DNA of 63,722 nucleotides, the filler included, from Platydemus manokwari (lineage: Eukaryota): assembly GCA_037951405.1 (NCBI GenBank). It is 6 parts of 6 records of this genome, joined end to end, with 100 filler letters (N's around TTAATTAATTAA, not from the genome) between each part and the next. Parts side by side here need not be neighbours in the genome. Positions count along the whole stretch, not along the records: positions 19,520 to 32,833 come from JBBMOY011762506.1; 5 more parts are not named here. One strand, 5' to 3'. The position numbers and the translations under genes were made by a program. Positions 23,903-29,690 of this stretch are shown piece after piece; position 1 is the first letter of the stretch; the number at the start of each line of letters is the position of its first letter. The notes beneath the pieces were generated by a model. The model ran no database searches. It had not been told where the DNA came from and saw only the letters and a program-made list of their open reading frames with translations.

Positions 23903-26544
23903 TCAATCAAAACTAGAAAATGCTTTGTCTGACCCATTCTCCAATGGAGGAGGAGGGCCATAGAATGCCATTTGATTAAATCGAGAGCCTGAGAAAGTTT
24001 TAAGTTCAGGTGAGATTGTTGGATAAGTACCATTTCCATTTGGAATAGGTGGTGGGAGTGTCTTCCATTCATTATCACAACTATTAAAAGATGTCAAAGG
24101 AGGTGGAACGCTGAAGAAATTATTATTCGGGACTCGATCACCAAATCTACTAATTCTTTGAGAAGGTACTCCACCATTAACCTGAGATGATGATAAAGTA
24201 TTAGGATTCGGTTTCCTTTCGACATTATTTTCTTTGATTGAATTATCAGAATAACTGCGAGTTAAATAGCCATCTGCTTTGGATTCATATCTATTTCCGG
24301 TAGCATTGTATGAATTATTTAATGAATTAGTCGGATTAATAGGTCGAGAATATCCATTGAACGGATGTGTTGAAGGCGTGTTGTATGCCTTTTTCCGTTT
24401 ATCCTTTGGAATATAAACCATATCATACAAAGCATCAGGAACCATTTGATTAGCATCTTCCATTATTTTTATTAGAAGATTCGCCTATTTAAAAGATGTC
24501 AAATCACGTAAATGTTATTATTGCTAAACTTACCATCTTAACATTTTTTCTATTAAAAAAAGTGAATGACATCCCGCTTTTGCCACTTCTAGCAGTTCTC
24601 CCAATCCTATGGATATAGTCTTCAAATTGATTGGGAAAATCATAATTGATAACGAACTTAATATCATCAACATCTAAATATCATTAATAAAAATAATTGA
24701 AATTTTTTATATTTATAATATTATTTTGTTCGGTCACAAGATGCCAACTAACTTCAAATCTTACTTTAAAAAGTTAGTCAACATGATGAGCCAAATATGA
24801 TCATGATATCGCGCTCAGCTTTTCTAGCAATTCTTGCCGTCATTTGTATTGCAAACCGGGAGTTATCCAGTTCTACAAATAACTATCAATAGAAAACGGC
24901 ATTGCAGAAAAGCTATAAAAATAACCCAAAAATAATTTAGAATGTGGCCATGATTAAACTTGATGTGAATAATAAAAAATATCGATCTACAAATGAAATT
25001 TCGACTTCAATTTGTATGGTCGATTCTGGACAATCCACATTCAAGATAAACCTTGACAAAACTCCAATTTACGAACTACCAGGATCATTATCCTATTTTA
25101 AAACCAAACCCACCTAATCCTCTACTAGCGACATCGGTTGCTACAAGAATATTCAGTGTTCGATTTCTAAAACCTATAATTATAAAATGAAAGGATGTTT
25201 TTAGGAAAATTTAATCACCATTTAAAATATATTCTCGATCCTTCTGAGATTTATCTCCATGCATTGCTCCAGAATTAAATCCATTTGATCGAAGTAATCC
25301 ACTAATTTTATCAGCTTTCCGTTTCGTTTCAGTGAAAACTATCATTTTATCTTGAGGATATTTTTTGATAAAATCAACCAGTCGACTATCTTTTGAATAT
25401 TCTTCTATAATCTCAACTACCTGTTGGATATCAGGATTGGCGTGTAAATCCCGTGATCCAATGTTAACTTGAATATATTTCCCTAAAAAATCCTGAGCTA
25501 ATTTTTGAACTTCCTTGGGCCAAGTTGCTGACCACATCAGAGTCTGTCTGTCGTGACGAATCTGAGAGAATATCTTTCGAATTTGGGGTTCAAATCCCAT
25601 GTCTAGCATACGATCAGCTTCGTCCAATACTACATATGTCGTTCGATGCAAATTAGTAATACCACATTTAAGAAGATCAATCAATCGACCCGGTGTTGCA
25701 ACAATAATTTCAGCTCCTTTTCTCAATTCACCAATCTGATCTCCCTTGTGTGCACCTCCATAACAACATACCGATCTAATACCAAACGAATAGCAAAAAT
25801 CGTTGGCAACACTTTGTACTTGTTGAGCAAGTTCACGAGTTGGAACTACTATTAAACAAATCGGCCCATCGCCCTTCCTTAATTTTGGTTGAGCTTTCAA
25901 ATGCACGATTGCTGGTACGATAAAAGTTGCAGTTTTCCCAGAACCAGTTCTAGCGATTCCAACTACATTACGACCACTCAAAGCCATAGGCAACCCCTGT
26001 GCTTGTATAGGAGTTGGTTCTGTCCACCCATTTCTAATTATTACCGAAACTATTTCAGGTGCGAAGTCTATTTCATTGAAAGAAAATATAGGCTTAGCTA
26101 TATTCTCGCCACTAACGGTCATCTCTTTCAATTTACGGTATCTCTCAACTTCTTCTACCGGTCTGTAAAAAACAATAGGCTTCTCTTTGTAAAAATTCTT
26201 TTCGAATGGAATGAGAACATGTGAATTCCAATCCACCATATCCAAAGTTTGTTCATCTTTTTTGTAATCTCTACTTCTTTAAATTATATGTAAGCAAATT
26301 ATAAATATTATTAAAATTACCTATAAGAGTTCCCATAAGGAGAGCGAGACCTAGATCTTCTAGGTTTATCGTTCCAACTGCGTTTATCAGTTTTGTCTCT
26401 TCCGTGGTCATTCCGATCACTTTTATTATATCTATCACTACGGTCGTTGTAACTACTCCTGGTGCTTTTATCATTGTGGTCACTTCTTTCATTACGGCCA
26501 TATCTATCAGATCGACCTCTTCCACTATCGGCCCAATGTGACAT
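23903..26544 (-). CDS. DDX5: DDX5/DDX17/DBP2-family DEAD-box RNA helicase, paralog B (5 exons)
   Basis: Exons 26544-26321, about 26276-25219, 25173-25114, 24673-24534 and 24484-23903. Motifs [74 protein letters not shown] and HRIGRTAR. Confidence 0.95.
24729..24914 (-). ncRNA. Structured intronic RNA element (two hairpins) in the DDX5-B motif-V intron
   Basis: Stem AGCUUUUCU-GCAAU-GCCGU pairs with ACGGC-AUUGC-AGAAAAGCU, with inner AUUUGUA/UACAAAU (24817-24914). Second stem AUGUUGACUAACUU/AAGUUAGUUGGCAU (24729-24795). Confidence 0.6.
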
Positions 26545-27413
26545 ATTGATTAATAATATTTATTTAAAAGTGAAACTCAGTTAAACAACCTATTTAAATA
26601 GTAGCAACCATAAAGCCAGTAAACAGGAAACATTGTTACACGATAAAACTTATTATTTTGTATAAATTATAAATATAATAAACAATACAGACTAAATATT
26701 TTAAAATAAAATTTCAGTTAATATTCAATTCAATAATTTTTGAATATTTTATAAATAAAATAAGCTGCTATCACATTTGTATCTGTTGTTATTGGCAAAA
26801 AATTAACTTTATAAATTTACCAATTAAAAAGTCCTTCTGTTAATTAAATTAAAAAAGAAGTTTGCTATTGTAAAATAAAAAACCTTGCATAGTTACAAAA
26901 TAATATAAAATCAAAAACCAAGAAAATGAAATCTTAGTTAATTATCATTATAAATTTCAATCGTTCCTAACGATACATAAAAATATTTTACTTCAATGAG
27001 AAATCAAAATATTTTTTTCTTTGATAATTTCTTTTTAAACTTTTATTTTCAATTATATAATACATTCGTTTACTTGTTTCTAAGAATCGTGAAAGAATTT
27101 TATTTTATTAGCATAAACATCTAATATCTCCATATCTTCTTTGATACATGTTAATTTTACGTCTACACTACCTTACTATAAAATTTAGATGTAAACAAAA
27201 CCTAATTCTCGATAATAAATCAAAATAAAGACCTGAATATCGGAATGGGGTTATCTCTTCAACATTATATTTTAGCAGTTGAATGATTAATATTGTATGA
27301 TAAATCTAAAAATTCTTTAAAGATTTAGGTTCAGTACTGTCGATACATAAAATATTTTATTTCATTGACAAATTCTCAACAAATTAAAAATATTTGTTCT
27401 AGTCTCAGTCAAA

Positions 27414-29690
27414 TCAATTGTAGTAATTATTTTGATTGTTGCCATCTGGATAATTGTATGACATGTATGTATTAGGTGGTGGTGCTGAATAATTATTTGG
27501 AGGAAGATACTGAGCATTGATACCCATTGGTGGTGGTGGTTGCTGATAGAAACCATTAGTATGTACAGGAGGTGGAGCATGGAAATTATTTTGTCTTCTT
27601 TGATCTCTTCTTATATGTGCCAAATCGTACAAGCTATCAGGAACTATTTGATTTGCTTCTTCCAAAACTTTCACCAGTGGTGCTGCCTGTGATCATATGA
27701 GTAACTAGAAATATCAATCAATTCTTGTCTTACACTCTTTGCATTCTTTCGATTGAAAAATGTATATGAAACACCAGATTTCCCCCGTCTTCCAGTTCGA
27801 CCAATTCTATGAATATAATCTTCGAATTGCATCGGGAAATCGTAGTTTATTACAACCTTAATATCGTCAACATCTAAACAATCCATTAATAACCAATGGT
27901 TGAAGAATATTATATTATTTATGACCATCTACTGATGCTTATTAATTGACAATGAGTTGGACAACAATGTTAGCCATCAATATCGTGATATTGTTCCTTT
28001 TCTGACATTCCGTTCTGCGATTTGATATTTGCCGAATAATCAATAACCATCCAATTCAGCACAATCAATCGGCAGTCGAATGACACATTTGGAACACTTA
28101 AGAAATTGTTTATAAATATTTTTTGAACGACAAAATATCTCCACAAATCAATACAGAGATATTCAATCAACAAATCATTTCACAAACAATCTAATATATC
28201 ACCACCGATACTTTTCCATCGTCACCATTCATTAAATCACAACAACAAAATTCCAAACATACCCAATCCTCTGCTAGCTACATCTGTTGCAACGAGCACA
28301 TTCAAATGTTCGGATCGAAAACCATTGAGAATATACTCTCTGTCACTTTGACTTTTATTTCCATGCATTGCTCCAGCTTTGAATCCGTTCGATCGAAGAA
28401 GTGAACAAATCACATCAGCTTTTTTCTTTGTTTCAGTAAAAACGATCATCTTATCACGAGGAGTTTTTCTAAGAATATCCAAAAGTCGACTATCTTTCGA
28501 GTAATCATCCACATTTTCTATAATCTGTTGAATATTTGGATTGGCATGAAGATCTTGTGATCCGATGTTCACTTGAATATATTGACCGAGAAAATCTTGA
28601 GCTAATCTCTGAACTTCTTTCGGCCATGTAGCTGACCACATCAATGTCTGTCTGTCTTGACGAATTTGACTGAATATCTTTCTGATTTGTGGTTCGAAAC
28701 CCATATCCAACATACGATCAGCTTCGTCCAACACGACATATGTCGTTCGATGAAGGTTTGTCAAATTACATTTCAACAAATCAATCAAACGGCCTGGTGT
28801 GGCTACAACGATTTCTGCTCCATTTCTCAACTCACTGATTTGACTTCTTTTATCCGATCCTCCATAACAACAAACCGATCTAATATTGACTGCCTTGCAA
28901 AACTCATCTGCAACAGTTTGTACTTGTTGAGCAAGTTCACGAGTTGGAACAACTATCAAACAAATCGGCCCATCTCCTCTTCTTAATCTTTCTTGAGCTT
29001 TCAAATGTACGATGGCTGGGATTAAGAAGCTGGCAGTTTTACCTGAACCTGTTCGAGCTACTCCCACAACATTTCTACCACTAAGAGCCATTGGCCAACC
29101 TTGTGCTTGAATAGCAGTTGGTTCATTCCAGCCATTCTTTCTAATCACATTAACTATTTCTGGAGCAAGGTCGATTTCATCGAAGGAAAATATCGGTTTT
29201 GGAATATTTTCTCCCTTCAATGTCATCTCTTTCACTTGTCGATATCGTTCCACTTCCGATATCGACCTGTTAGCAACAATCGGTTGTTCTCGGTAAAAAT
29301 TCTTCTCAAATGGAATCAAAGTATGTGATTTCCAATCTACTGCATTCAAAGTTTGTTCATCTCTGCGATTTTCTTTATTTCTTTAATTAATTCATTTATT
29401 AAAATTATTATTTCCACAATTTTACATCATTACCTGTACGAATTTCCATATGGTGATCGAGATCTTACTTCTTTCCTCTCATATCCGTGGTGTTTATCAT
29501 CATATCTATAATCATTGTATTTATTACTTCTGTCATTATAACTACTATTCCTATCATTGTAGTTACTATTTCTGTCATTGTATTTGCTACTCCTGTCATT
29601 ATAATGACCATTCCTATCGCTGTAACTATTCCTATCACTACGATCGTATCGATCAGATCTGCTACTTGAACTATAAGACCAATTTGACAT
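27414..29690 (-). CDS. DDX5: DDX5/DDX17/DBP2-family DEAD-box RNA helicase, paralog A (4 exons)
   Basis: Exons 29690-29434, 29380-28263, 27873-27734 and 27686-27414. Full helicase motif set including DEAD, SAT, ASRGLD and HRIGRTGR; highly similar to paralog B. Confidence 0.95.
27921..28096 (-). ncRNA. Structured intronic RNA element in the DDX5-A motif-V intron
   Basis: UGUUCC..CAUUC..UGCCGA pairs with UCGGCA..GAAUG..GGAACA (27992-28096), and AUGGCUA pairs with UGGUCAU (27921-27977). The linker motif is shared with paralog B. Confidence 0.5.

Follow-up and report, generated by a model that had tools for sequence, protein, structure and literature searches.

The tandem helicase genes and their long introns

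The window considered here, the whole stretch of DNA that was analysed, comprises 63,722 nucleotides (nt) from the flatworm Platydemus manokwari (assembly GCA_037951405.1), and one of its pieces (19520-32833, JBBMOY011762506.1) carries two tandem minus-strand genes for DEAD-box RNA helicases of the DDX5/DBP2 type, each with an unusually long intron that contains a structured RNA segment. Gene A extends over approximately 29690-27414 and has introns of 53, 389 and 47 nt, as judged from its open reading frames (ORFs) and their translation. Its tandem paralog, gene B (approximately 26544-23903), was delimited from ORFs, translation and homologs, and has introns of 44, 45, 440 and 49 nt. The two proteins are 79% identical over their core ORFs, and their best named matches are flatworm RNA helicases (59-63%), followed by DDX5 and Drosophila p62 (56%). 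The homologs bearing the names DDX5, p62 or Dbp2 contain the domains PF00270 and PF00271. These protein matches agree with an initial annotation of this DNA, made from the sequence alone, which had described a tandem pair of DDX5/DBP2-like genes.

The long introns (25113-24674 in B and 28262-27874 in A, both minus strand) have GT..AG ends and interrupt the reading frame at the same place, splitting the ASRGL|D junction in helicase motif V. Their coordinates and lengths, 440 nt in B and 389 nt in A against 44-53 nt for all of the remaining introns, are as the annotation had given them. The closest relative that we found is L001, an ENA metagenome contig (4021 nt). Its protein shares 86% identity with that of A, and its motif V intron of 378 nt (L001 3073-3450) occupies the same position. 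A short intron of 45 nt at the EYILNG|FR junction (25167-25211, minus strand) is kept in B and in three Logan contigs of more distant flatworm relatives (L083, L084 and L085), and is absent from both A and L001; in view of this common loss, L001 is most simply the ortholog of A. Synonymous sites among A, B and L001 are near or at saturation: the synonymous divergence (dS) is 1.23 for A and B and 2.8 for A and L001, and for B and L001 it lies beyond the limit of the formula, with fourfold-site identities of 0.52, 0.46 and 0.35, respectively.

A conserved block and two hairpins

Despite this saturation, pairwise alignments of the three long introns beat all of 500 dinucleotide shuffles in every pair (z between 4 and 11). 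The similarity is concentrated in a block of approximately 100 nt, recovered in all three introns, that runs from the 3' strand of a first hairpin through a linker to a second hairpin; the remainder of the introns is not alignable. In B the block occupies 24740-24846 (minus strand; nhmmer E-value 2e-25 with a profile of all three sequences) and in A it occupies 27934-28024 (minus strand; 1.8e-18), where the linker and the adjoining 3' strand of hairpin 1 persist and hairpin 2 has degenerated. Profiles built from any two of the sequences still detect the third, with E-values of 5e-4 for A, 1e-8 for B and 3e-9 for L001. The same profile search found no further copy of the block in the 13-kb piece or in 88 other loci. 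Taken with the leave-one-out detection, this indicates that the block is homologous, that it has been under more constraint than the remaining intron sequence and that it is not a dispersed repeat. Its best conserved part is purine-rich and comprises the hairpin 1 3' strand together with the linker (AGAAA[AG]G and its neighbours); in B the linker lies at 24785-24815 (minus strand) and, with the adjoining strand, has most of its columns invariant in all three sequences. The conserved linker of the initial annotation is therefore real, in that each sequence is found by the profile of the other two.

The introns are also more stably folded than their composition would predict. Compared with dinucleotide shuffles, the whole introns give z-scores of -5.56 (B), -3.61 (A) and -4.17 (L001), which confirms a stability that the annotation had left to be checked in A and B. 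Hairpin 1 by itself gives z-scores of -5.40 in B, -2.98 in A and -6.10 in L001. In B (24816-24914, minus strand) it is 99 nt long and folds at -34.5 kcal/mol, a value that none of 200 shuffles equals, and its base consists of AGCUUUUCU/AGAAAAGCU plus GCAA(U)/(A)UUGC. In A (27992-28096, minus strand) it is 105 nt long, at -32.2 kcal/mol, with the outer stem UGUUCC/GGAACA. These outer stems, said at the outset to differ in sequence and yet to pair, are indeed those of the minimum-energy folds in both genes. Where the base reads GCAAU/AUUGC in B it reads GACAU/AUGUC in L001, so that two pairs have changed on both sides and still pair. The annotation had further proposed a shared UGCCG/CGGCA core; A and B do both contain this string, but their CGGCA copies do not fall at aligned positions, and hairpin 1 of L001 has GCGUUUCC/GGAAACGC in its place. 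In both A and B, hairpin 1 is more stable as sense than as antisense RNA.

A scan of the 13-kb piece in 120-nt segments placed two of the three lowest z-scores inside the long introns (the 5' part of the A intron and hairpin 1 of B). About 8 of the 220 segments reach z <= -3, so hairpins as such are not rare in this piece. Each long intron has an extra stable hairpin in its 5' half, at 28100-28219 (minus strand) in A, at intron positions ~88-134 in B and at ~3125-3235 in L001, and these have no sequence similarity to one another; that of A is the lowest-scoring segment of the whole piece (z -4.16).

Hairpin 2 is more restricted in its distribution. In B (24741-24784, minus strand) it forms 15 base pairs (bp), four of them G-U, with a z-score of -4.29, and it is homologous to L001 3342-3389 (z -3.46). 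The core of the stem is identical in the two and the sequence of the loop differs. The equivalent region of A (27928-27984, minus strand) folds no better than its shuffles (z -0.58, with 56 of 200 folding as well); it reads UCCAAC where B and L001 have ACUAAC, and there is no stable stem. Since B and L001 share the hairpin and L001 groups with A, hairpin 2 is ancestral and has been lost in A, and the initial description of a two-hairpin element in both paralogs is only half right: the second hairpin holds for B and fails for A. The hairpin 2 stems are far more stable in the sense orientation (-13.7 kcal/mol in B and -15.6 in L001) than in antisense (-5.1 and -6.5). Each contains four G-U pairs, which restrict the fold to the sense RNA. 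This strand preference points to a structure of the helicase pre-mRNA, rather than to a DNA element or an antisense RNA.

What hairpin 2 contains is suggestive with respect to splicing. In both B and L001 its 5' arm carries (U/C)UGACUAACUU, a perfect branch-site consensus, followed by a run of U and by AG dinucleotides in the loop and the 3' arm; the ACUAAC, the U run and the nearby AGs are all base-paired with their complement within the hairpin. In B this look-alike of a branch site and 3' splice site (ACUAAC, U run and AAAG) lies at 24764-24778 (minus strand), and ACTAACTTT has a single exact occurrence in the window. At their real 3' ends, the motif V introns of A, B and L001 match the branch site only weakly; in the same intron of a monogenean and a cestode, the real 3' site is preceded by a CUAAC at a distance of 10-17 nt. 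When internal AGs were scored with a crude 14-nt matrix, built from ten real 3' splice sites against an AT-rich background, the best of them fell in the hairpin 2 region in each intron (position 350 in B, 325 in A, 306 and 298 in L001), and that at position 350 of B scored 6.5 against 6.2 for the real 3' site. Use of a site in this region would retain 75-90 nt of intron and, in B, would lead to a stop after about 27 codons (read by hand).

Complementarity of the linker to the start of the downstream exon had prompted a test of linker pairing with the splice-site regions. Compared with shuffled linkers the results were inconsistent, with z from -0.3 to -2.5 for the 5' site and from +0.7 to -1.1 for the 3' site, and the pairing was rejected. 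A cassette "poison exon" spanning the block was likewise judged unlikely from sequence: the 3' site that it would require lacks a U tract, and GUUAGU would have to act as its 5' site.

The motif V intron in relatives and in known systems

The position of this intron is old. The ARGL|D junction is interrupted in A, B and L001, in L083-L085 and, among annotated genomes, in the monogenean Cichlidogyrus casuarinus (L086), in a cestode (L087) and in a snail (L088), which bears out the view, already taken in the annotation, that the position is common to distant DBP2/DDX5 genes. The three Logan contigs (~62% protein identity) have motif V introns of 181, 863 and 177 nt, respectively, and none of these, including the 863-nt intron of L084, contains sequence similar to the element. 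The monogenean intron is 397 nt long (L086 4239-4635; the other intron of the gene has 37 nt) and its fold beats all of 100 shuffles (z -3.03), with no sequence similarity to the element. The cestode intron has only 32 nt, similar to the other intron of its gene and not unusually long, while the snail intron of ~2.26 kb is the longest of its gene. A metagenome scan for further orthologs turned up no relative above 60% identity, and searching proteins again with the exon end gave no further candidate ortholog. Among the sequences compared, the element itself is limited to Platydemus manokwari and one close relative. The sole other close homolog (P0002, UniParc UPI00060CAE9B, 618 amino acids, 74% identity) looks like a faulty gene model, in which ~10 residues around FRS..NVL before motif V are skipped and the tail repeats part of the helicase core.

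To our knowledge, how the DBP2/DDX5 intron controls the level of the helicase is not settled for either yeast or animals. According to Kilchert et al. (2015, PMC4695336), dbp2 intron 2 has kept its position and length from yeasts to higher eukaryotes and is poorly spliced. The S. pombe intron is a recruiting site for Mmi1 and reduces the mRNA level, and the factors that negatively regulate dbp2 splicing are stated there to be unknown (PMC4695336). As cited in the same paper, retention of the S. cerevisiae DBP2 intron is relieved in a helicase-dead mutant (Barta and Iggo 1995), human DDX5 contains the conserved intron (Moore 2011), and autoregulation or decay control through the DBP2/dbp2/DDX5 intron goes back to Iggo 1991, Barta and Iggo 1995 and Moore 2011. 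The flatworm introns resemble these in their position within the helicase core and in being unusually long for their genome (440 and 389 nt versus 44-53 nt). They differ in that the yeast elements are not defined as such hairpins, S. pombe using UNAAAC motifs bound by Mmi1, and there is no sequence similarity between the yeast elements and the flatworm one.

A closer parallel comes from plants. The DDX5 homolog DRH1 and its paralog RH46 carry, in a long intron, a conserved hairpin (the DEAD element) in which an alternative 3' splice site is concealed; once helicase activity has opened the hairpin, splicing shifts to non-coding products (Burgardt et al. 2026, bioRxiv 10.64898/2026.01.23.701338). 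The element is called plant-specific by its authors, who suggest that such sensors are possibly more common (bioRxiv 10.64898/2026.01.23.701338). The flatworm candidate likewise lies in the long intron of a DDX5-type gene and its closest paralog, where hairpin 1 occurs in A, B and L001 and hairpin 2 in B and L001 but not in A, and its hairpin 2 stem overlaps putative 3'-splice-site signals. The differences are considerable: the plant element is a single stem of ~20 bp and the flatworm one has two hairpins and a conserved linker; the signal hidden here is mainly a branch-site consensus; paralog A has lost hairpin 2; and no sequence or Rfam relationship was found, the presence of the plant motif in Rfam 15 not having been checked. 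In the literature that we consulted on helicase-controlling introns, the plant hairpin is the only defined RNA structure, and our search found no publication on flatworm DDX5 introns.

Possible functions of the element

The long intron is best explained as the deeply conserved DBP2/DDX5 motif V intron, which here carries a structured RNA module of ~170 nt made up of hairpin 1, the purine-rich conserved strand with the linker and, in B and L001, a hairpin 2 of 13-15 bp. As to what the module does, we tentatively prefer, at somewhat below even confidence, a cis-acting structured element in a regulatory intron, in which hairpin 2 hides a splice-site look-alike and its unwinding by the helicase provides feedback. 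The annotation had proposed a cis-element that the helicase remodels to control the splicing of its own transcript or that of its paralog, and this proposal fits the conservation, the sense-specific fold, the paired changes at the base of hairpin 1, the splice-like sequence in hairpin 2 and the literature. With hairpin 2 closed, the look-alike would be hidden and the intron removed at the proper 3' site. High DDX5-type helicase activity would open the hairpin and make the hidden site usable, and splicing could then shift to an mRNA in which the final 75-90 nt of intron are left in and lead to a stop codon; alternatively, splicing may stall and the intron be retained. Either outcome would lower the output of helicase, a negative feedback like that of the plant hairpin. 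We infer these steps of helicase action and splicing outcome, namely the remodelling, the intron retention and any cross-regulation between the paralogs; what the analysis shows directly is the gene structure, the conservation, the folding of the sense strand, the paired changes in hairpin 1 and the splice-signal-like content of hairpin 2.

A number of observations weigh against this feedback scheme. The element is missing from the relatives at ~62% identity, which makes it young and narrowly distributed, and the ~180-nt introns of L083 and L085 show no excess folding (z -0.8 and +1.0). The comparison of the element comprises three sequences (A, B and L001), two of them paralogs, so that the paired changes in hairpin 1 are a count and not a statistic, and the identity within the block is moderate: the pairs range from 59 to 66%, and 45 of its 107 columns do not vary. 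Since hairpin 2 is lost in A, the feedback may not need it, or A may be regulated differently. The ACUAAC could be a true, distant branch site, in which case unwinding would help productive splicing, and the splice-site matrix is a crude one. Finally, the sole run that contains the stretch (X1) yields contigs of DNA-like behaviour, with no splice joints.

Several other explanations must be considered. The hairpins could do no more than condense an intron of far excessive length for a spliceosome accustomed to 44-53 nt, drawing the 5' splice site near the branch site and the 3' site as in long yeast introns, and so assist constitutive splicing with no feedback at all. The introns of A, B, L001 and the monogenean are structured along most of their length, every one of them has an unconserved 5' hairpin, and the minimum-energy folds of A, B and L001 close the interior to leave an open path of ~45-65 nt. 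However, such end-to-end closure is expected of random RNA as well, and the closing helices are not at aligned positions. Compaction also leaves unexplained why some 100 nt of sequence, the unpaired linker included, are conserved while the 5' hairpins are not, and the L083 and L085 introns show no excess folding; we consider it unlikely, although still deserving of serious weight. Alternatively, the block could be a series of linear protein-binding motifs (a GAA-type enhancer or silencer, or a decay element like the Mmi1 sites), to which the hairpins would be incidental. It is indeed in the purine-rich hairpin 1 3' strand and linker that conservation is strongest, and S. pombe relies on sites bound by protein in its version of the intron (PMC4695336), but hairpin 1 stays paired where both of its strands have changed, hairpin 2 has two conserved arms enclosing a loop of differing sequence, and the strong preference for the sense strand argues that the pairing itself has been selected. 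This second possibility seems to us rather unlikely. So too, and a little more so, does the absence of any function, with the block being the residue of a common intron origin, the relic of an inverted-repeat insertion or a DNA-level element. The moderate conservation, the presence of other segments at z <= -3 and the loss of hairpin 2 in A would all suit it. Against that, the block is still detected by leave-one-out profiles with synonymous sites near saturation, the rest of the intron is not alignable, no second copy turned up in the data examined, and the G-U pairs tie the fold to the sense strand.

Very improbable, in our estimation, is that the intron hosts a stable processed small RNA, whether H/ACA-like, C/D, a microRNA (miRNA) or of a new class. 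The H/ACA alternative had been raised in the annotation, and there are points of resemblance: the layout is hairpin-hinge-hairpin, the hinge hexamer at aligned positions (AUAUCA in A and B, AAAUCA in L001, hence A[UA]AUCA) fits ANANNA in all three sequences, although in AT-rich sequence such a match counts for little, and an ACA starts 14 nt after the upper stem of hairpin 2 of B. The ACA is peculiar to B, however: A has AUA there, and L001 has neither triplet. Pseudouridylation guide pockets are lacking in hairpin 1 of L001 and in hairpin 2 of both B and L001, whose stems run on uninterrupted, and hairpin 1 of B has only a one-sided bulge; membership of the H/ACA small nucleolar RNAs (snoRNAs) was therefore rejected. 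A C/D snoRNA fared no better, as strings resembling the C (RUGAUGA) and D (CUGA) boxes occur on both strands in single sequences only and the Rfam C/D hits are at chance level. A miRNA has been reported in the conserved mammalian DDX5 intron (Moore 2011, as cited in PMC4695336), but here there is no conserved 22-nt arm: the 3' arm of hairpin 1 is identical at 14-16 of 22 positions with its conserved part at the 3' (wrong) end, and the only Rfam miRNA match is mir-788, in antisense, at an E-value of 0.55. The Rfam search that the annotation had called for, run permissively (E-values up to 10) on the piece and the L001 intron, gave only chance-level hits; at gathering thresholds on the loci of four relatives it produced nothing real, and ARAGORN found no genes.

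If the preferred feedback reading is taken one step further, the module could be an independently arisen animal counterpart of the plant DEAD sensor, through which the helicase would gauge its own activity via a hairpin-locked branch site and decoy 3' site that B would have kept and A would have shed. We regard this as doubtful, if by no means far-fetched; were it true, RNA structures that sense helicases would have made repeated use of the DBP2/DDX5 intron as a platform, in more than one kingdom. As a candidate the locus is compact and defined in sequence, it belongs to an animal whose introns are tiny, and it has a natural comparison built in (hairpin 2 in B and none in A). It could be used to test directly whether helicases sense their own activity via hairpins that hide splice signals outside plants. 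Should the feedback reading fail, what is left is an ordinary structured and moderately conserved intron segment.

Some minor features of the locus may be recorded here. In run X1, the Logan contig over 27405-28330 (the 3' part of gene A, with its long intron unspliced) has a word depth of 36, and neighbouring contigs of the locus (24600-27400) have depths of 5-12; the higher value, which is a depth and not a copy number, could come from additional, nearly identical copies or from the assembly. The N-terminal exons of A (29430-29690) and B (26317-26544), both on the minus strand, are of low complexity and rich in S, D, R and N (SDRY and NDR repeats), and the C-terminal exon of L001 (3730-4021) encodes tandem NGYSQPPPS-like repeats that A and B do not have. 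A strong fold (z -4.07) lies at 23780-23899 on the minus strand, just past the stop codon of gene B and thus probably in its 3' untranslated region. Elsewhere in the same piece, upstream of the helicase genes, an ORF of 127 amino acids (20071-20454, plus strand) resembles, as judged by eye, a fragment of a retroelement integrase core.

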